Shown: one piece after another, positions 4,056 through 36,365 of the stretch
Layout of the letters: each line of letters starts with the position of its first letter
Position numbering within the stretch: the stretch's first letter is position 1
From: Ministeria vibrans ATCC 50519
Lineage: Eukaryota > Protista > Filasterea
Reading direction: 5' to 3'
Assembly: GCA_943704425.1 (NCBI GenBank)
Contig: CALSCP010002753.1
Location: 1-39,455 of the forward strand
DNA: 39,455 nt
Program-made: the position numbers and the translations under genes
Notes under the pieces: generated by a model
Told to the model about the DNA's origin: nothing
Databases searched by the model: none
What the model saw: the letters and a program-made list of their open reading frames with translations, nothing else

Positions 4056-5632
4056 TTACTGAAGACGAACATCCATGTCAAAGAGCTCGTCGCCCAGGAA
4101 GCCATCTTCGGCATCGATGGAGATGCTCTCGGCGCCACTGTACGCATAGCACATGAGGCACAGCCCCAACAGCGAAAAGATGGTCACGGCCGCTCCGCCA
4201 ATCTCGGCCACGATCTGTACCCACTCAAACACGGGCGATTGTCTGCAAGTCATTACATGTGTGCAGTGTGAGTCAACAGTCCACGCACACACACACACAC
4301 ACACACACACAATTTATATGCTACATTTTGTCACTCTTACTTGACTGAGGCTTTGAAGCGCGCGAGTTTGAGGAAGTAGCATGCGCCTTGAATGACTGTG
4401 TAGCCCGATCCGGTAATGTCATTAGTACATTGTTCGTCGTTGAGGCTCACATACGAAATGCTCCAGTCGTCCACTACTCGATTAGCAGTCTAAATCATGA
4501 AAACCAAAAAAAAAAAAAAAAAAATGAAATGGGGTTACACTCTTTTTAGTAATATTTTATTTCTCCTGGTGTGTCTTACGTCTTGTCGTGCAGTGTAGTC
4601 CATCATGGTGACACGACGGTAGAGCGCCGTGGGTCGTGCGGCGTCAATGACGGGCACAGGGAAGGGCACCTCAACGCCATTTGCGGTAAACGTCACAAGA
4701 GTGCTTGTGGGCACTGCAGTCGAGCCGGTGAAGGTCGACGTGGTCGGAAAGGCTGAAAAGAGCAACAAGAAAACAAAAGCAACAGATCAGTTCTGAGCGC
4801 TTGACGAATTTCCCCTTACTGTCGACATAAGTTGGCACAGTGATGCGCACTCCGTCCTGCCAACTATCCGAGTAGCACAGCACAGCAGAGCCTGTGTTGC
4901 CCGACGTGACAACGGATGCGGTGGCAGGGACAAGTGCGGCACACGCTGCACTGTCTGGAAAGGTGTGTTCGATGTAGCAGTCAAGGGGACTTGCGCCGTT
5001 GTGGCACGTCACTGTCAGAGTCAGAGCTGTGCATCACACACAATACAACGAATATTGTGTAAGTATGATATTTTTGTGTTTTGGCCTTTCGACAAGAAAA
5101 ACGTCGCGGGAAAGACGCGCGCAGAGGTCTCCGCAGACCATACAACGCCACACACCCAAACTGGATGACGAGCAATGAGAGTGCCTCGAGAACTTTGATG
5201 AATTTGGTGTGTGTCTATAAAAAGACAAATGTAGTTTTTCGCAAAGCGCAGCGACACATGAGTCGCTCCCGACGAATGGAGAGGGCCAGCGTGGCGCATA
5301 AAAGAGATGGAGAAGTGAGACGCCCTTGACAATGCGCCGTGTCGACCAGGAGACGCCGGAAACGAAAAAATACAAAAACGAAAAGAAAAAAAAAAAGGGG
5401 AGAAAGTAAATATAAATGGCATACTTGTAGCACCAGTAGAGGTGGTGGCGAGGTGGGAGGCATAGGGGTTGGTGGACCAGGCGTAGCAGAGCCAGCCAGC
5501 ATAAGCGGCAACCAGAAGACCCGACACGATCGACACGACAATGCCGGCCGTCGTCGGTCTTCTTGGAATCACGGCGTAGGCATCAAAGATGCCTGCCCAT
5601 CGGCGATCCTTGATCCGCTGTCGAGCGAGCAT
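4056..5632 (-). CDS. Two-TM protein with a large Cys-containing loop, ~307 aa (ENaC/DEG- or ERGIC-like topology). Exons 5632-5425, 5026-4820, 4752-4580, 4489-4341, 4242-4056
   Basis: Five GT-AG bounded exons sum to an open 924 nt. TM1 is GIVVSIVSGLLVAAYAGWLCYAW and TM2 is IVAEIGGAAVTIFSLLGLCLMCY. The family assignment is tentative. Confidence 0.75.
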
Positions 5633-6011: not shown

Positions 6012-6404
6012 TCATGCTTCAGTCTCGCCAAAGCGACCGTCAAGACTAGGGGTCTCGTTGCTTTTTGCAGCTGTGTCGCGCTGGATTTGTTTCTGAAGCT
6101 CGATCCTGCAATGCAAAGAAAGACATATCAACAACCAAATTGGGAACAAGACAAAGACCGTGAACACAAATATAGGGTACCTCGCTTCTCGCTCTTCTTG
6201 CAGGGCCCCCTCAAGAGCATCAACGCGCTCGACCAGAGACGAAACAAGCTTCTGGAGGCCCTCGGTGCTGTCCATAAGGACACGCAATGATGGAAGACGG
6301 GGCTTGGCACTGCCAGGAGAGCCAGACGCAAGGGCACCCGTAGGACTGGCTGGATTGGACGCAGCTGCTGAGAGAGGCACCGCACCAGTCGGCGATCCTC
6401 CACT

Positions 6405-6450
<46 letters not shown>

Positions 6451-9234
6451 TGCTGCTGTTTCTGTTCGGTGAAGGAGAGACGCGCGCCATGCCCACTCCC
6501 ACCAGCTGCAGCGACGGCAACCCACTTGCGTTGACCCATCCCGCTGCCCGCTCCACTCCCTCCCGTCGCGTCCATGGGCACTGTTGAGGTGAGGGGTCGT
6601 GCCACTTTTGAGCGTGCCGTTTCCGGTGTGATTCGCTCAAATTGATCGTCGTCCATTGTTTGCTAAGAAGACAATCATAGAAAATCAACATAAATGACAA
6701 CCAGCAAAGTCTTCCTACCACCTTCGCAAACGTGTTGGGAGAGGTACTCTTGATGACACGCTTACGGAGAAGACGACCCCCAAGACCCTTGCTGTGTGAT
6801 GATGAGGTGGAATTAGAGTCGGGCGCAGACGAAGATGTGACGAGTGACGAAGAGCTGTTTGCGCTGGCGCTGGTGGGGGAGGCGGAGGAGGAGGGCGTCG
6901 CCGACGCGGTGTTGCTGGCCGCCATGTAGTTATGATGGGCGTTGTTGGCATTGCTGTTGCTATTACCACCTGTGGAGTTTGTGGTGGAGGAAGAGGATAG
7001 AGGTGCGACGCTGAGCTGTGCGTCAGCGCTGGAGCGACGAATGGCGGCGGCACTGGAGAAGCAGTCGAGGACGGTGGTTTTGTCGAGGGCGCTGTTAAAG
7101 CTGAGTACAACGCGCCGCCTCCGACCTACATACTGCATGTCGACGCAGTGGTCCAGACCGCCCGTTGTGGGCGCGTCCACTGCAATGGTGCTGCCAATGG
7201 GCCATCGCTCTGACATGGCAAAGCTCGTGACACCGTTGACCTGTTGCATTGCGAGCAACAGCATCTGCCCTTGCTCGCGATACACTACAAGAGCACGCTG
7301 TCCCTGCGCCCCTGACGACGACGACGCCGCACCGTTGGCCACTTGGTGCTCGCTATTGACGAGCAATGCAAAAATGACGAGCTCGGGGGTGCCCATCTCG
7401 TCGCGATCCTGCCAACCTTCGACCTCGCTACACATAACAGTGACCTCTTGCTCTTTGACACGTCGCAACACTTCTAGGTCCGATGCCGCCTTGTCACACA
7501 TGTCGGCGGCCTTTTCCAGCGCATTCGCATCCACATGTCGTTTGGGCAGGTTGCGCAGGAGATCACGCAAGAGCACACGGTAGCGCGCAAAACGGCGCAG
7601 TGGCATCACCAAATGAGCGGTAATGGCGAGTGTGCACGGACCTGTCGACGACACCGGCGACCCTTTTGCTTGCTCAATGAATGCCGCCAGTTCGGCGTTG
7701 TGCGCGTACTGTTTGAGTGCGCGCAAAGCATAACCATGGCGCGACACAAACGTCTTGTAGGCGGGCAAGAGACGCGGTAGTGCCTCCATCATACAACGAC
7801 CAATGCGACAGGGCTTGCCATCGCGTGGCGCTGCCTCCTCCATGGCCTGCAACAGAGCCAGATGCAACGCATACAACTCACCAAGGCCACAGGGCCGCTC
7901 AAACACCGCCTGTCGGTCCTTTTCTGTCATTAGATCGCGTCGCTCCAGCAATGGCGTCACGTACGTGCGTCGGTAGTTGCCCATGTCCTGCACATACGTG
8001 CGCTCCTCTTCCAACAGTTCCTAAAAAAAAATTAAGTTTACTTTTTCTTTCCATTTTGCTCAGTCACTCACTCACTCTCTTACACACACACAGAGATACA
8101 AGTATATATATATATATTATATCACTTTGTTTCTTTTCTTCTTTCTCCTCTCTCTCTCTCTCTCTCTCTCACTCTGTGCTCTTTTCACCTCTGAAACCAT
8201 AGTAAGATAACGAATGGCATCGGGAGACATGGAGTCATCAGGGGAGTCTGAGTCGGCGCTCTCGCCTGCAGCAGTGAGAGTAACGTAGTTGGAAGGGAAC
8301 CAGCCACGGGCGCCGTTGCACTCGCCCTCCCACCAGCCACCGTCGGGCATGGAGAGAATCTTCACAGGGGCACCCTCGCTGAGAGTCAACTCGTCTGTTT
8401 TGGTGGCTGCATAGTCGTACTCGGCAAGGGCCATTTGCTGTGGCTTTGCCGTGGTCGATTTGATGGCGGACGCCCCTGCCGAGGGTGTGATGTCGCCGTC
8501 TCCCACGAGTGCCGCAAGTGCCGCCGTGGTCGACGCACCGCTTGTGGGTGTAACGTGGTGTTGATTGGTTTTGGCAGAGAGTGCTGCAATAGCTGCGCTT
8601 GGTGTCTTGGGTGTGGCGGGGGACTCCTCGCTGACGTTTGTAACGGCCGCCTCCTTGGAACGACTGAGTAATGCCAGGGTACCGGGAGATGAAGCTTTGC
8701 GCCCTTTGGCATTAAGCAAGTCAACGCCGAAACTGACACTTCGCGAGCTGCCATCGAGACGGGTCACTTCGGGGTTGACGAGCGACGACGATCGTTTGTT
8801 TTGCAACGACGTAGCACGTCCACCACTACTACTCCGCGGCACTGCCGCCGCCACCTCCTCCTCTTCCTGAAGCTCGCTCTTCTCCGGAAATCCAGCGCGA
8901 AGTGCAAGCAAGACCGAGGCGACGGTGGACATGGAGACCCCGCCATTGAGGCTTGTTGGTGTGAAGGGTTCGCTCACGCCAAACTTGGCCCAGGTGAAGG
9001 CGTCAAGGAAGCGTGACACGTTTGCCTGCTCCGCTCCCTCTGACATGGGCGGATCCTCAAACAAAGGAATGCTTCCGGGGCCAAGTGCGTTCGCCAGGCG
9101 ACACAGAACGACACCACTTTTCAATACCTATGATGAGATCAAAAAAAATCAAAAACAAGACGTAACAATGATTGTCTCGTTTTGGGCAAGTTCACACACA
9201 CATACACACACTCATTCACACACACACACACACA

Positions 9235-9271
<37 letters not shown>

Positions 9272-11591
9272 ACTCACTCACTCACTCTCTCTCTCTTGAA
9301 AGAATCAAGGAAACACGAATGTCTCGATGGACTGTAGGGTACTCAGGCTGCCAATATGCAGCAACAAGCGGGTACGATCAGGGTGTGGGGTGCTCGTGGG
9401 AGACGCGACGGCGTGGACTCGAAAAAAGTAATCGACATGACGCAAAATGGGGTAAAACAAAAACGTCTGTGTAAAGGAAAGGGGAGATAATGGATAGAGT
9501 CGAGAAGCACTTGGGCTGCGTAAGAGCCCAAATGGAGTGTCCGTGGCCAGCGTGGCGACTTGACGACGTCGGGGACAGTCTCATTGGCGAAAAGACAAAA
9601 AGGATAAGAAAAAAANNNNNNNNNAATCACAGCCGGGCAAATGGTCCGTCAGCAGATTGCTGCGAGGCCCAACCCAGTCGCATCCGCTGGCTTTGTTCGA
9701 GCAGTACACTTTGGCCTTGCCCAGTAGTTTGAGCACGGCACTCGCCACAGGCTTGACGTCTTCCTGCGGCACGACGGGCTTCCGATCGACGGGGCACGCG
9801 TGCTTCTGGGCGAGGGCGCTTTGCAGGCACACGGCGCAGAACATGTGCTCGCAGGCGAGCATTCGCGGGTCAACGAGCGGCTGATGGCAAATGTGGCACA
9901 GAAGCTCGTCATCGACCGGATTGCGCGAAACGTAGTCAAACGCTGCAGAGAGCGAGCGAGAGAGACGAACAAGAACAAAACAGAGACGGATAAGTCGCAC
10001 AGTATGAAGGATGGCGCGAGGGAACGGCAGCGGAAAGAGAGCGAGGCGGAAAAAACGAAATGAACCGAAAATGAAAAAAAGACGGGAAAAAAAACACCAC
10101 TCTCAGTCTGTACAAAAATTTGGAGAGTTTTTTGAAGAGCTCATGATGGGCTATGGCCAAGGCAAGACGGTAGACTACGCTAAATCAGCTTAGCAAGAAA
10201 ATGATTGAAAATGGCTCAAAATGTTCAGAATAATAAAATTATTCATTCTTTCTAATAATTTGACATTCTGGCATGTCCACTGACTTGAAGATCACGGTGA
10301 AGACGTCGCAAGGGAAGCAGTTCACGACGGTGGCGCAGTCGTCGTGGACGGTCCTGCAGTTCAAAGGGGCCATTGTAAACGACTGTGACGTGCCCGCCGC
10401 AGCACAGCGCATCATATTCTCGGGTCGCATCCTTGAGGATGGAGACACCCTTGAGTCTTGTGGTAGGCGCGAAAAGAGCGTGAGGGAGCGAGAGAGTTTT
10501 ATTTTTTTGTCATCGTTCACGAACTTTCGACGCGAATGCCACATTTTAGGCATCAAGGAGGGCCACACCGTCCATCTTGTGCGACGACAAACCGCCCCGA
10601 CTGCACCAGCACCCACAGCGACCCCTGCGGCGGCGTCTCCCGCAGCGACTGGCGCGCAAGCTCCGCTCTTTAATGGCCTGCCTTCCTTTGGCGCGCCCGC
10701 CGCCGGCGCTGGTGCTGCGGCCGCCGGCGGGTTGCCTGGACTTGGCGGGATGACTCAAGAGCAGATGGCGCAGGCGATGCAGTCGCCCGTCATGGAGGTA
10801 GATGCAATTTCTTGCTATATCCCATTCGCCTGCTAAATGTTTCCTAAATTACTATTGCCTATAATGATAATTATTATTCATATTATGTGAAGCAGCTAAA
10901 GCAGCAATAGCAGCTAAGGCAACAGCGCAACATGGAAAATTTCGATTCTCTATTTATTTTCTTATTATTCATATTAATCGAACTAACGTTTCATTGTCCC
11001 TGTATCGACTAGGCACTTATGAACAACCCCGAGCTCATGCGCTCCATGATGGAAACTATGGCCACGACCAATCCACAGATGCAACAAGTGATGGAGCAGA
11101 ACCCCGAGTTGCGCCAGGCGCTCAATGACCCCGCCACAATGCGGCAAATGATGCAGGTAACATTCAACTTGTCGTGATTGCACAACTAATTTTTTGTTGG
11201 TGTTTTTCGTAGATGATGCGCAATCCATCTTTGCGTGCCGAAATGATGCGTAATTCTGATCGAGCCATGAGCAACCTTGAAATGATGCCAGGCGGCTTTG
11301 ATGCACTGCGTCAAATGCATACGCAGGTGCAAGAGCCCATGATGCGCGCGGCTGAGGAGCAAGCGCAGGCACAGACCCAACAGGCGGCCAATCCGTTTGC
11401 GCTTTTGATGGGTGGTGGTGCAAATGCGGGGGGAGCAGGAGCGACTCCAGCAGCGCCTACAGGCGACGGGAGAGCTGGTGATGCCATGCCAAACCCATGG
11501 GGTGCACCCGGTACGTTCCGCACGTCTGTCACTGTCTGCGTGGTATGTGTTTGCGTGTGTGTCTTATTTAGTTTTGTATATATATATAGCT

Positions 11592-11647
<56 letters not shown>

Positions 11648-12867
11648 GCCAGCGGCGGGTGCTGGAGGGATGTTTGACCCAGCGAGTATGTCGGCGATGC
11701 TAGAGAATCCCATGATGCAACAGATGATGACACAAATGACACAAGACCCCAACATGATGCGCCAGCTTATGCCGCCAGGGATGGCTGAGAACCCCATGGC
11801 ACTCGGCATGATGCAGAACCCTAATCTGATGCGTCGATTGATGGAGCCGGCCAACATGCGGGCAATGATGCAGATGCAGGAGGCAATTCGCCACTTGCAG
11901 AGTGTAGGGTTGCTCGAAGAGTAAGTGTGATATAAATATATATGCGCGTCTTTGTGGTGCCTGTCAATTGCTGATTGTGCCTGATAGGATGATGGCCATG
12001 GGCGGTGGAATGGGTGGAATGGGTGGAATGGGAGGAATGGGAGGGTTGGCAGGGGGCCTCTTTGGTGCTCCCGCTGCTCCCGGCGCGGCTCCCACTGCTA
12101 CACCAGCTGCCAATGCGGAGCAAGTGTATGCGTCGCAGTTGCAGCAGCTCAATGACATGGGCTTTGTGGATCGTGCCAGTAACATTCGTGCTCTCCAGGC
12201 AACATCTGGCAATGTCAATGCTGCCATTGAGCGCCTTTTGTCCGGCCTCTGATATCATTATTAAATACTTTTTGTTGTTTTGATTTTTCTTTTTTCTTCT
12301 TCATTTGAGTTTTTTTGGGGGGGGAATATGAGAAACAAAACGAAGAAAAAAACAACGTGACACGCACAAAAAAAAGGAAAAAAAAACAAACACAGACAAG
12401 ACGCAAAAGGAAAAAGCACCAGATCACATGTCATTGAGATCAGCAAGAGTCTGATCGAGCTCGGCCTTGACCTCGCTGTACTTGATTCGGTTCTCTTCGG
12501 CTGCGTCCTCGAGCGCCTCAATCTTCTTCTCTTGGTCACGCACTTTTCGCTCCGCTGCCTCCGCACGCAAGTCCGCCTCACGGAACCTACCGGGACAGAC
12601 AAATGTGTTAAAAAACAGTCGCTCACAATACATGAGTGTTATGTGTGGGGTGTGTGTATGTTCGTACTTCTCTTCCGTCTCCTTGAGCTGATCGTACAGC
12701 TCGTCGCTCTTGTCCATCTGTGCGCCCATTCGGCTTGCCGTTGGGTTAGCGCCCATTTCGCTCAGCTCGCGCTCAGTCTCCTTCAGCTTGTCCTCAAGAT
12801 CAACAACACGCTCCTCAGCGCGCTCCTGAAACACCAAGGAAATAATATTATTATTATTATTATTAGA

Positions 12868-12917
<50 letters not shown>

Positions 12918-13830
12918 GATAACTAGACAAAACACGTACCAAGTCGCCCTCGACAAGGAGGAGCTTTCGCTCTGCGCCGTTGGCACGGTTCTCTGCGTCG
13001 TTAAACTGCTCCTTGAGCGCGGCAATCTCGTCACGGAGCACCGACAACTTGTCCGTGTCCGAGTCCTGCTTGTTCTCAAAGATCCTAAGAGGAATAACCA
13101 AGATGTCAACAGGTGGTGAAGCGGCAATCTTTGTATGTTTGTTTGTTGCCGGTTTACTTCTTCTCACGCTCAAGCTCATCACCACGCTTGTCCGCGTCTT
13201 CAAACTACGCAAATAGTTTATATGTCAGCATATGAAGCGAGTCGCGTCTAGGCCATCCCTCTCGCTGTCGCTGTCTCTCTCGTGTCTCTCTCACCTTGAC
13301 CGCGAGTTCCTGGGCTCGGGACTGTGCGGACTCAAGCTCGTCCTCGAGGAGCTGAACGCGCCTTGACAGGCTCTCAAGCTGTTTCTCGGCCTCGTCGGCG
13401 CGCGACCTCTCCTGTGCCAGGTCAGCCTCCGCCGCCTCAGCGCGATCCTTGGCGTTGTCACACTCGTCGCGGAGCGCCGCCATCTTCTTCTTGATTGCTT
13501 CCATTGCTGTATGTGTAGGTGGTTGGAGATACAAAAAATATAACTACAAAGAGAGAGAGAGAGAAAGAGAGGTTTAGCCTCAAAAAATGTGACAAACAAT
13601 CCAAAAAAAAAAAAAAAAAAGAAGAGAAGCAAAAGGGAAAACGGTTTGACGAGACTTGCGGGGAGCAACTCCAGGGAGGAAAGACATCAGAGAAGGCTAG
13701 GACGGCGCTTGATGCGGCTCACCTTGTGCAGGTAGCGCTCGTCGACACAGGCGGGGGCTGGTTCGCTTGGTGGAATCGCTTGGAGCTTTCGCAGCCATTG
13801 GACGACCACACCGCAATCGCTGCCGCTCAT
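6012..13830 (-). CDS. PIX/Cool-type Rac/Cdc42 GEF (ARHGEF6/7-like: CH-SH3-DH-PH-coiled coil). Exons 13830-13723 (proposed), 9127-8189, 8020-6719, 6662-6181, 6105-6012
   Basis: CH core [19 protein letters not shown]; SH3 ALAEYDY...ELTL...[20 protein letters not shown]; [12 protein letters not shown]...[16 protein letters not shown]; C-terminal coiled coil [13 protein letters not shown] and tail ETEA resemble beta-PIX. Exons 2-5 are solid; the distant exon 1 is inferred from homology and phase. Confidence 0.85.
6406..6458 (-). repeat. (CAG/CAA)n encoding polyQ in PIX
   Basis: tgc/tgt repeats on the + strand. Confidence 0.9.
9625..10144 (-). CDS. RING-HC plus partial TRAF/SIAH-type Zn finger protein (RNF41/TRAF/PDZRN-like N-terminus); 3' end lost at N gap. 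Exons 10144-10114, 9942-~9625
   Basis: [10 protein letters not shown]|S joins in phase 1 to [38 protein letters not shown]...CPVDR...[14 protein letters not shown]...DHLPGC. Confidence 0.8.
10273..12252 (+). CDS. UBQLN: Ubiquilin/Dsk2 (UBL-STI1-UBA), 6 exons
   Basis: UBL ([16 protein letters not shown]...[11 protein letters not shown]); Met/Gln-rich STI1 repeats ([26 protein letters not shown]); UBA ([38 protein letters not shown]). Confidence 0.93.
12424..13504 (-). CDS. TPM: Tropomyosin, 240 aa. Exons 13504-13295, 13204-13158, 13084-12940, 12825-12668, 12586-12424
   Basis: N-terminus [11 protein letters not shown]...[11 protein letters not shown]; [11 protein letters not shown]; EGDLERAEERV; C-terminus [12 protein letters not shown]. 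Exons sum to an open 723 nt. Confidence 0.92.
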
Positions 13831-14175
13831 GACTGTGACTGGGATGAGATGTATTGAACGATGGTGGGCCGCGTTAGACAAGTAACTAACTAAAAGTAAG
13901 TAAAAAGTGTGAATTGTGAAAGACTGAAAGTGTGAAAACAAACTTCGTAACCATTTCGTGAATGTTTGGATCGGGAATAAAATTCGGGACTGATTGTCAA
14001 GAAAATCACAGCCTTTGTGAGGGAGTGTAGAACCCTAAGAAAAGGGGCGCAATCCAGGAGCGAAGCCCAGTAGCCTACCTCAAAGCCTCAAACAAACTGT
14101 GAAACAGTGTACCAAATAGGTCTCGCATGTTATTCAACTTATATTATTATTATTACTTTTGTCTCCCCCAACTTC

Positions 14176-14706
14176 ATGACGTGGCTCCAACAACTAATTG
14201 ACGACATTACACCGACTTTGTGGATGGCAGGGCGCGTCAACGCGCTTCTGTTGGTCGTCTTTGTCGTGTCGGCCATTCTCATCAATTTTTACTCGCGCGC
14301 TGTGGGTGCTCACGACGATGCCCCGACCGCACCGCCCTCGCGCCCGACGCACCCAACGGAGGAGGAGCATTTGCTCGACGCGTCGGCGCCCGCGAAAGCC
14401 AAGCGTGCGAGCCGCCGCACCACTTCAACAGAAGAGGGCTCTTCGCATGTCGCAGCCACCGCAACGCGTCGCAGCCGTTCGCCAGCGCGCCAGCACACCT
14501 CTGCCGCACGCACTCGCAGCGTGTCCCCAGTGCGCACCCGCAGCTCGTCGCCTGCTCGGTCGCGTAGCAAGTCTCCCTCAAGGGCAAAGCGAGCGACTAC
14601 CGCCACTGCATCGACAACGACCACATCAACAACAACTTTAAACGTGCTGGAGAGACAGCCTCGACACCGCAAGACTCCCTTGAAGATATTGAGAATGTAC
14701 GAGTGA
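14176..14706 (+). CDS. Hypothetical single-TM protein with Ser/Arg/Thr-rich basic tail
   Basis: GC-rich intronless ORF from ATG 14176, with hydrophobic ALLLVVFVVSAILINFY followed by repeated RS.SP motifs. No family recognised. Confidence 0.6.
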   Translation: MTWLQQLIDDITPTLWMAGRVNALLLVVFVVSAILINFYSRAVGAHDDAPTAPPSRPTHPTEEEHLLDASAPAKAKRASRRTTSTEEGSSHVAATATRRSRSPARQHTSAARTRSVSPVRTRSSSPARSRSKSPSRAKRATTATASTTTTSTTTLNVLERQPRHRKTPLKILRMYE

Positions 14707-22601: not shown

Positions 22602-23014
22602 NNNNNNNNNNGGAAAAAAAAAAAAAAAGAATAGAACGGAAAGGGAGGGCGAGAGAGGGAGAAGAGACGGGCACATCGCCAGACTATGGGCGATTTTCCA
22701 AACGTACCTGTAAAGAAAAAAAAAAACAGTGCGTAATGAGATGATTTATGAAATGATCAACACAACACAACACAAGAGAACAAAATTATTTATTTCTCAC
22801 ATCACGTCTATGAGCGTACCTCGACACCTTGAGAAATACATGTGTCTACTGATTCCCCCCTGATGAGTGATGACCAGCGCTATTACGACAATTTTCATTT
22901 TTGTGTCTTCAATTGAGTGTCCATTTCAAAAAAATAACAAGTTCATTATAATAATAATAAATTATTCTGTTCATACAACCGTGAGAAGGGAGCTCGGGCG
23001 GGGTTCCCTCATTC

Positions 23015-33227: not shown

Positions 33228-36365
<3,138 letters not shown>

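Follow-up and report, generated by a model that had tools for sequence, protein, structure and literature searches.

How does a gene obtain its beginning when the second exon opens in the middle of a domain and the only candidate for the first exon lies beyond several other genes? This question is raised by the gene for a PIX-type RhoGEF of Ministeria vibrans ATCC 50519, located on contig CALSCP010002753.1, whose entire 39,455 nt are referred to as the window in the following. According to the initial annotation, the first exon of PIX is located 4.6 kb upstream of the second, so that the first intron would harbor genes for tropomyosin, ubiquilin and a RING protein. Complete genes within introns of host genes, on both strands, are known from animal genomes (PMC11694760, PMC3192792), and in the cholinergic locus VAChT is situated in the first intron of ChAT in the same orientation (PMC3053374). 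We analyzed whether the PIX locus is such a case or a product of the assembly.

Results

The PIX gene requires an upstream coding exon

The predicted protein resembles alpha- and beta-PIX (ARHGEF6/ARHGEF7, Cool) in the order of its parts, with calponin-type CH sequence at the very N-terminus, then an SH3 domain and a DH domain; a full CH domain would depend on helix A being provided by exon 1. Residues 2-72 of exon 2 correspond to positions 31-100 of the 109 positions of the Pfam CH profile, and the score of 22.1 bits falls below the Pfam cut-off of 26 bits because the first 30 profile positions are absent. The best match of this part among solved structures in the PDB is the CH domain of ARHGEF6 (E 1.6e-7, beginning at chain residue 39), and ARHGEF7 is matched as well. 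An SH3 domain (PF00018, SH3_1, 56.2 bits) occupies residues 235-279 of exon 2, and the DH domain follows in exon 3, where it covers residues 1-181 (PF00621, 88.3 bits). All five exons of the gene are open, and the CH, SH3 and DH motifs are intact. In contrast to alpha- and beta-PIX, the linkers of the Ministeria protein are long and of low complexity, and PH, GIT-binding region and betaPIX coiled coil are not detected by Pfam: no match to PH or betaPIX_CC was obtained in exons 3-5 at E ≤ 5, and exons 4-5 yielded low-complexity matches only. Read from the sequence, exons 4 and 5 (6012-6662, minus strand) contain a stretch rich in Gln and a tail resembling a coiled coil; by eye only, the region following DH and the heptad-like tail look compatible with a PH domain and a coiled coil. 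Protein searches for PIX orthologues or transcripts of the same species, using the whole of exon 2, the DH region and the CH region, gave no match. The search of representative proteins was dominated by SH3-domain matches, and the seven records examined are multi-SH3 proteins of the CIN85/CD2AP type. A metagenome scan exclusively returned calponin-type CH proteins with 29-48% identity.

Immediately upstream of exon 2 the sequence reads tcatcatag/GTATTG, and its TAG is in frame, so that the reading frame cannot extend further upstream. As the exon opens at CH profile position 31 directly after this stop, an upstream coding exon is needed. Pfam, the open reading frames and the CH profile hence uphold the earlier observation that exon 2 begins within the CH domain at tcatcatag/GTA with no first-helix exon nearby; besides the candidate described below, no helix-A-like exon was present among the open reading frames of 9128-9615, and a CH profile revealed none elsewhere in the window.

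A 108-nt exon is the candidate for the start of PIX

The isolated exon proposed earlier as the start of the gene is indeed present, with ATG, an AAG/GTGAGC donor, phase 0 and the translation previously given (Table 1). Its GC content is 62% (GC3 69%) compared to 39-44% in the flanks. Its codon log-odds fall inside the coding range, a result of little weight as the same model calls tropomyosin exon 1 non-coding. We further applied a motif-and-register test, with motifs picked after the sequence had been seen, which asked for W[LIVM]xx[LIVM] at 22-30 residues from the exon end together with an aromatic-aliphatic pair in register with FLQAS/LKDG of ARHGEF7. Both motifs occurred in the candidate exon alone, among 3,703 ATG../GT phase-0 candidates in the window and 118 in the interval, for which about 0.01 matches are expected by chance. 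In addition, the Met precedes the Trp by 10 residues, and the length of the sequence before LKSG suits an N-terminal CH domain of the PIX type. Since all junctions at the locus are phase 0, agreement in phase is weak evidence.

Similarity searches with the 36-residue peptide were negative throughout: there was no match in Pfam, no phmmer match in the PDB at E ≤ 10, although this library includes the CH chains of ARHGEF6/7, and no match in the CH scan of the own genome at E ≤ 10. A custom calponin-type CH profile built from metagenome proteins did not see the exon either, which is a weak negative because, as PDB alignments indicate, calponin-type CH profiles fail to align helix A of PIX as well. 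A hand alignment to the N-terminus of human PIX scored at about 10 bits and thus below significance. Exact-pattern scans of genome contigs and viral contigs produced no match. The CH scan revealed no orphan helix-A exon elsewhere in the genome; a PIX-type helix A may escape this profile. Based on its position as the sole candidate and on the fit of strand, phase, length, coding-like composition and motif register, we assign the exon to PIX, for which it probably provides the start codon and CH helix A. The idea that these 36 residues are the start of PIX is reasonable, while the supposed similarity to CH helix A is statistically undetectable.

Table 1. Features of the PIX locus and of the sequence between its first two exons (window coordinates).
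Feature	Position	Strand	Characteristics
Candidate PIX exon 1	13723-13830	minus	ATG...AAG/GTGAGC donor, phase 0, 108 nt, 36-aa peptide; would supply CH helix A and A-B loop
Intron sequence following exon 1 donor, up to T-run	13621-13722	minus	unique in genome
T18 homopolymer, upstream border of tropomyosin-ubiquilin-RING block, possible false join	13603-13620	minus	18 T
Acceptor-like site and 39-nt leader	13505-13546	minus	CTAAA branch-like motif, CT tract, tAG at 13546-13544
Tropomyosin, five coding exons, ATG at 13504	12424-13504	minus	PF00261, 58.5 and 54.2 bits
Ubiquilin	10273-12252	plus	ubiquitin-like N-terminus PF00240, 53.6 bits; UBA C-terminus PF00627, 36 bits
5' 580 nt of RING-zfTRAF-BTB-pentapeptide copy, cut by gap	9625-10206	minus	match to other copies
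9-N scaffold gap	9616-9624		RING coding sequence on one side, T-run on the other
Non-coding stretch upstream of PIX exon 2	9128-9615	minus	unique in genome; T7 start; (GA)n(GT)n arrays; acceptor tcatcatag
PIX exon 2	8189-9127	minus	CH from profile position 31, low-complexity linker, then SH3
PIX exon 3	6722-8020	minus	RhoGEF (DH) domain and region after (PF00621, 88.3 bits)
PIX exon 4	6662-6181	minus	splice sites inferred
PIX exon 5, stop included	6105-6012	minus	splice sites inferred

The intervening genes and the scaffold gap

Of the three genes initially described between the exons, tropomyosin and ubiquilin are real as judged by Pfam, whereas the RING gene comprises its first 580 nt only and is truncated by the gap. 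Met1 of tropomyosin aligns to position 1 of the Pfam Tropomyosin profile. A tropomyosin paralogue is located on another contig (C1478), where the upstream region was uninformative. From the donor of candidate exon 1 to the acceptor-like site in front of tropomyosin an intron would measure 179 nt, and the 39-nt leader, which is free of stops and translates to 13 residues, keeps the frame from exon 1 into the tropomyosin ATG. The sequence would allow the acceptor at 13546-13544 to be used for splicing to tropomyosin. A 13-mer, CGCCACGCTGGCC, that is common to the stretch upstream of PIX exon 2 and the first intron of the neighboring gene did not turn out to be a genome-wide element.

The truncated RING gene belongs to a RING-zfTRAF-BTB-pentapeptide family with at least five copies in the genome (9626-10206 as the repeat), the full copies of which encode RING, zf-TRAF, BTB_2 and pentapeptide repeats in a gene of about 2.5 kb. 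The copy in the window is 100% identical to that on C2431 over 9626-9950 (325 nt) and 97-98% identical to those on C1670, C2404 and C1570; its first exon presumably spans 10144-10114 and is followed by an intron and a RING exon starting at 9942. A stray contig of 129 nt (C2597) bears the window copy's own combination of variants and extends 19 nt further into the coding sequence, so that the 9 N do not represent what the gap really contains. No separate contig carries the missing remainder of this copy. Exon 1 and exon 2 are therefore not connected by uninterrupted DNA, as the N9 gap lies inside a repeat of at least five copies. Beyond the gap, the T-rich start of the PIX contig resembles that of the 3' UTR of the RING family.

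Both borders of the block are formed by T-runs, T18 at 13603-13620 and T7 + N9 + TT at 9609-9626, and every assembly gap inspected coincides with a homopolymer or a microsatellite. On C2457, a 4.5-kb block (138822-143349) between direct (GA)43 and (GA)44 repeats, with N9 at one border, likewise splits the gene for V-ATPase a; a corresponding check of a chitin synthase gene showed nothing. The assembly contains no contig that bridges the flanks of the two T-runs. RNA-like sequencing runs contain 0.58-0.59 of the words, and DNA-like runs 0.94-0.96.

Discussion

We tentatively prefer the explanation, itself held with some doubt, that the 108-nt exon is the true first exon of PIX and that the three-gene intron was created by draft assembly. 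Both the membership of the exon in PIX and the falseness of the join are inferred here. If so, exon 13830-13723 would contribute the start codon of PIX, helix A of the CH domain and the loop that leads to the conserved LKSG motif, and the first intron would in reality have a length of about 0.6 kb, consisting of 102 nt, one T-run and 481 nt, and would be removed by ordinary splicing; the sequence ...GCTTCTCTTC(T)n would run straight into CTTATCC... The 4.6 kb with tropomyosin, ubiquilin and RING would reside elsewhere in the real genome or have another form there, and the downstream end of the block (13602-9625) would represent a contig that broke within a gene present in several near-identical copies and was afterwards linked by 9 N to the contig of PIX. 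The locus resembles known misjoins of draft assemblies at collapsed repeats and low-complexity DNA in its gap within a near-identical multi-copy gene, in the stray read-sized contigs, in the block edges at homopolymers or microsatellites and in a pattern that is repeated elsewhere in this assembly. The nesting is made doubtful by the position of the N gap inside a collapsed multi-copy gene in combination with the T-runs at both borders and the similar arrangement at V-ATPase a.

Several aspects argue against an artefact. One of the two false joins that would be needed, that between exon 1 and tropomyosin, differs from typical misjoins as it has no N and crosses only 18 T, which ordinary reads can span; for a false join at this position, a merger of contigs on a homopolymer overlap has to be assumed. 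To leave a gene and return to it takes two wrong joins, and such a detour is not the commonest kind of misassembly. Moreover, the resemblance of the PIX contig start to a RING 3' UTR is compatible with a correctly placed join, the gap then concealing a RING gene in full. The lack of any contig joining the two T-run flanks also speaks against an artefact. Finally, statistics do not support homology between exon 1 and CH helix A, and the motifs of the register test were defined post hoc.

Some of these points directly favor the arrangement as assembled, in which the three genes are truly located between PIX exons 1 and 2 and PIX is expressed by cis-splicing over at least 4.6 kb, or over about 7 kb should the gap hold the remainder of the RING copy. 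We consider this unlikely, even though exon 1 and tropomyosin are contiguous across the short T18, the PIX contig begins like a RING 3' UTR, and it would be an odd coincidence for a random scaffold join to place exon 1 on the neighboring contig, upstream of PIX and on the same strand. The good acceptor 179 nt from the exon 1 donor, in frame with the tropomyosin ATG, would fit a first exon, and possibly a promoter, which may be common to PIX and tropomyosin in analogy to ChAT/VAChT, and animals are known to possess nested loci as well as loci with a shared first exon (PMC3053374, PMC11694760). However, transcription would have to pass the 3' ends of tropomyosin and RING, and a splicing event that spans 4.6 kb or more and ignores a poly(A) site as well as the five acceptors of tropomyosin on the same strand appears implausible in a genome whose introns in this region measure 70-410 nt. 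A shared exon would also introduce an upstream in-frame ATG and thereby a 49-residue N-terminal extension of tropomyosin, yet Met1 of this protein already matches the first profile position. With the N gap in a collapsed repeat, T-runs at both borders in the same design as at V-ATPase a, and a truncated RING gene, the initially proposed 4.6-kb intron nesting three genes is unsupported as it stands. Nothing in the analysis spoke for or against trans-splicing. A broader version, which we regard as rather improbable, takes the arrangement for a genome-wide habit by which blocks of one to five genes are moved into introns through recombination between like microsatellites or homopolymers. Such insertions would leave direct low-complexity brackets, the T-runs here and (GA)43/(GA)44 at V-ATPase a, and hosts such as PIX would rely on long-range splicing for their expression; the promoter and first exon at 13830 might then be common to PIX and tropomyosin.

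Two further explanations concern the identity of exon 1 and the state of the gene. The 108-nt open reading frame might not be part of PIX at all, the true first exon being unassembled, either hidden in the gap or, if the N9 join is wrong, located on another contig; the exon at 13830 would then be a 5' exon of tropomyosin or belong to an unannotated transcript from a divergent promoter that also serves the plus-strand gene at 14176. Consistent with this, none of the searches recognized a CH domain in the peptide, the donor together with the branch-like CTAAA, the CT tract and the AG constitutes a typical 179-nt intron into the tropomyosin leader, agreement in phase carries little weight where every junction is phase 0, and nowhere is the scaffold less reliable than at the join beside PIX. 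In contrast, the register test picks out exactly this exon with about 0.01 chance matches in the interval, the spacing from Met to Trp and the length to LKSG fit a PIX-type CH domain, and GC3 is coding-like amid AT-rich flanks. As a tropomyosin leader, the exon would bring along one upstream ATG in frame and another out of frame, and the genome scan identified no orphan helix-A exon elsewhere, with the reservation that the profile may miss helix A of this type; we consider it quite unlikely that the exon is foreign to PIX. Very improbable in our view is that the arrangement is real and has recently broken PIX, leaving exon 1 as a stranded relic, perhaps now used by tropomyosin only, and the remainder silent or translated from Met28 of exon 2 into a protein without a working CH domain. 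The identity of the RING copy to another one over 325 nt would indicate a recent rearrangement of the region, and exon 2 does possess an internal ATG at residue 28. However, the five exons have remained open with intact CH, SH3 and DH motifs, the 27 residues ahead of Met28 hold the most conserved CH motif, and neither tropomyosin nor ubiquilin is a recent duplicate, each being a single and unique gene here.

As assembled, the locus resembles the host/nested pairs of animals in that complete genes on both strands reside in an intron of another gene. It differs from these in the number of two or three genes, one of which is a multi-exon gene on the same strand with its own poly(A) site, and in the use of the host's first intron in a compact genome with introns of roughly 100-400 nt, features that apply to the arrangement as assembled only. 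With the cholinergic locus it would share a same-orientation gene, tropomyosin, in the first intron of the host and, judging from the sequence, possibly a common 5' exon or promoter; VAChT, however, is encoded by a single exon and functionally coupled to ChAT, whereas tropomyosin has four introns. We know of no functional link between tropomyosin and PIX.

If the nesting were true, a compact protist genome with introns of about 100 nt would splice a signaling gene over a distance that holds several entire genes, including one of the same orientation, and PIX and tropomyosin might share their first exon, which would bear on the pairing of splice sites and on the scrambling of gene order. In the likelier case of an artefact, gene models and claims of nested or split genes at low-complexity borders or small N runs of this assembly would be untrustworthy without support by reads. 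Under either of these two explanations, the PIX model of M. vibrans gains a probable start codon and CH helix A.

Results

In exon 2 of the gene annotated as PIX, Pfam aligns residues 2-72 to the CH profile (positions 31-100 of 109) and places an SH3 domain after it within the same exon. Among solved structures, the CH part of this exon has as its top match the CH domain of ARHGEF6 (alpha-PIX), aligned from chain residue 39, and ARHGEF7 is also among the matches. Domain order, structural matches and the mid-CH start of exon 2 therefore identify a gene of the PIX type (CH-SH3-DH), with a second exon that begins in mid-domain. The gene is like alpha- and beta-PIX in its domain order and its best structural relative, whereas Pfam found neither a PH domain nor the C-terminal PIX motifs. 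As the TAG preceding exon 2 reads in frame with PIX, an upstream extension of the exon 2 frame is impossible, and an upstream exon must provide the start codon together with about 30 residues, helix A among them, as the initial annotation had maintained. Its statement that no exon for the first CH helix lies nearby held for the 488 nt that separate the gap from exon 2, which are unique and in which no helix-A-like exon was found.

Within these 488 nt, the stretch at 9480-9615 upstream of exon 2 shares with the first intron of the neighbouring 2-TM gene (5280-5410; minus strand) a T-run, then CTT(A/T)TC..TTTTTGT..TTTTCG, and the 13-mer CGCCACGCTGGCC. The three further genomic occurrences of the 13-mer are all in coding-like sequence; a genome-wide element was therefore rejected in favour of local similarity. 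Positions 8122-8160 fall in the intron between PIX exons 2 and 3, which is GA/TA-rich.

Features of the PIX region and of the loci compared with it (window positions unless a contig or locus is named)
Feature	Position	Strand	Remark
Candidate exon 1	13830-13723	minus	ATG, 36 codons; donor AAG/GTGAGC, phase 0
Tropomyosin	13504-12424	minus	own Met at family profile position 1
Ubiquilin	10273-12252	plus	confirmed
RING-family gene, 5' end	9625-10206		ends at the 9-N gap
Gap	9616-9624		9 N; stops the window RING copy
PIX exon 2	starts 9127	minus	directly after tcatcatag
PIX exon 3	8020-6722	minus	RhoGEF domain (Pfam)
Other N runs	22602-22611; 35672-35706; L034 5244-5251; L036 5377-5386		
RING-family relatives	L034 (contig C1670); L035 (C2404); L036 (C2431); L026 (C1570)		
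Tropomyosin paralogue	C1478:58986-59273 (L037)		shorter; first-exon DNA 81% identical
V-ATPase subunit a gene	G000:C2457:138134-146620		locus L038 covers 137800-143900

The ATG exon with its phase-0 donor was found on sequence reading as annotated. It is single-copy in the genome and forms a GC-rich island (62% GC, GC3 69%; flanks 39-44% GC), and a divergent plus-strand gene starts 345 nt from it. Its peptide gave nothing in Pfam at E ≤ 1 or in a phmmer search of all PDB chains at E ≤ 10, though that library includes the ARHGEF6 and ARHGEF7 CH chains, and the exon was matched neither in a six-frame CH profile scan of the whole genome (E ≤ 10) nor by a custom profile from 15 metagenomic calponin-type CH domains. 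These negatives weigh little, since alignments of this kind to real PIX CH domains (1wyr, 2l3g) begin only at chain residues 34-40 and omit helix A. We also compared all phase-0 ORFs of at least 15 codons running from ATG to a GT on both strands of the window (n = 3,703, with 118 on the minus strand of 9128-14170). W[LIVM]xx[LIVM] at 22-30 residues from the exon end occurs in 27 candidates and an aromatic-aliphatic pair at -4/-3, the register of ARHGEF7 FLQAS/LKDG, in 53; exon 1 alone combines both, against a chance expectation of about 0.01 in the interval 9128-14170. Because the motifs were set after viewing the sequence, this is suggestive and not proof. We consider it likely that exon 1 is the first exon of PIX. 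Database searches for transcripts or for independent assemblies gave no matches.

Three genes had been placed between the PIX exons. Tropomyosin and ubiquilin are confirmed, and are unique in the genome save for one tropomyosin paralogue; the RING piece proved to be the gap-cut 5' end of a multi-copy gene. The family has at least five copies with RING exons 97-100% identical, the window copy matching that on C2431 at 100% identity over 325 nt and those on C1670, C2404 and C1570 at 97-98%. Full genes of about 2.5 kb encode RING, TRAF zinc finger, BTB (BTB_2) and a variable pentapeptide-repeat array. Its middle part is present in the assembly only in the three complete copies and in the opening 109 nt of C1570, a contig that breaks off at this point. 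Several copies are interrupted by assembly breaks, and the read-sized stray contigs C2597, C599 and C1574 derive from the same spot. C2597 (129 nt) carries the exact variant combination of the window copy and continues the RING coding sequence for another 19 nt. The near-identity of the copies and this continuation thus indicate that the contig ended inside a collapsed repeat. The true content of the gap is other than 9 bases, and nowhere is the scaffold less reliable than at the join to the PIX contig.

On the gene strand, 102 nt separate the exon 1 donor from a T18 run (13620-13603), while the PIX contig opens with T7 at the gap, whose other edge is also a T, so that the block 13602-9625 is flanked by T-runs on both sides. 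Low-complexity DNA marks the breakpoints of this assembly: every gap examined (N8, N9, N10, N10, N35) lies at a microsatellite or homopolymer, these small runs (8-35 N) adjoining (CA)n, (GA)n or A15-A22, and the sole large gap, of 370 N, falls within the tandem repeats of one RING-family member. In the one other split gene checked, that for V-ATPase subunit a, the highly conserved last exon (profile 704-815) lies 4.9 kb from the remaining exons, and the intervening block sits between direct arrays on C2457, (GA)43 at 143359-143444, which an N9 gap adjoins, and (GA)44 at 138734-138821. This split repeats the design of the PIX case. A compact V-ATPase a paralogue is present on C1656.

Discussion

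The intron at 13722-9128, reported to nest three genes, is probably not real. The gap within a collapsed repeat, the T-runs at both borders and the design repeated at V-ATPase a all argue for a false arrangement, as does the biological implausibility of the splicing required, which would span at least 4.6 kb, or about 7 kb were the RING gene complete, and bypass five same-strand acceptors as well as two 3' ends. Tentatively, we favour the reading in which exon 1 would belong to PIX and the block would be misplaced; with the block and one T-run taken out, PIX intron 1 would measure about 0.6 kb, the first intron of the neighbouring gene being about 410 nt. Such an artefact, however, requires two wrong joins returning to the same gene, and a real arrangement would also fit the junction between exon 1 and tropomyosin, where only 18 T and no N are crossed, the T-rich start of the PIX contig, which is like the start of the RING 3' UTR, and the PIX-like exon upstream on the same strand, which argues for truly neighbouring contigs. 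Real nesting with long-range splicing appears unlikely, and a real arrangement in which PIX was recently broken highly improbable.

Exon 1 could, on its sequence, also be used by tropomyosin alone or be shared with PIX. A sequence with a branch-like CTAAA, a CT tract and a terminal AG ends at 13544, 179 nt downstream of the exon 1 donor, and the 39 nt from there to the tropomyosin ATG are in frame and stop-free. Exon 1, this acceptor-like site and the leader (within 13505-13830, minus strand) give a frame open up to that ATG. The interval from the donor to 13544 looks like an ordinary intron of this genome, so that exon 1 is possibly a tropomyosin leader. Splicing to tropomyosin would add, from an in-frame upstream ATG, a 49-residue N-terminal extension, and would also bring a second, out-of-frame ATG, both of which would be odd given that the tropomyosin N-terminus matches the family profile from position 1 on. 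In the C1478 paralogue the introns are rich in (CT)n, and the upstream region is AT-rich and lacks an acceptor-like site. That exon 1 is not of PIX, the true exon being unassembled, seems quite unlikely.

Nested genes are known in animals, including the ChAT/VAChT locus, whose first intron holds a same-strand gene (PMC3053374, PMC11694760, PMC3192792). As assembled, the putative arrangement in Ministeria vibrans would resemble that locus in holding a same-strand gene, tropomyosin, in the first intron of its host, PIX. Were the nesting real, it would thus be of a kind already known, and unusual mainly for a compact genome and for the number of genes.
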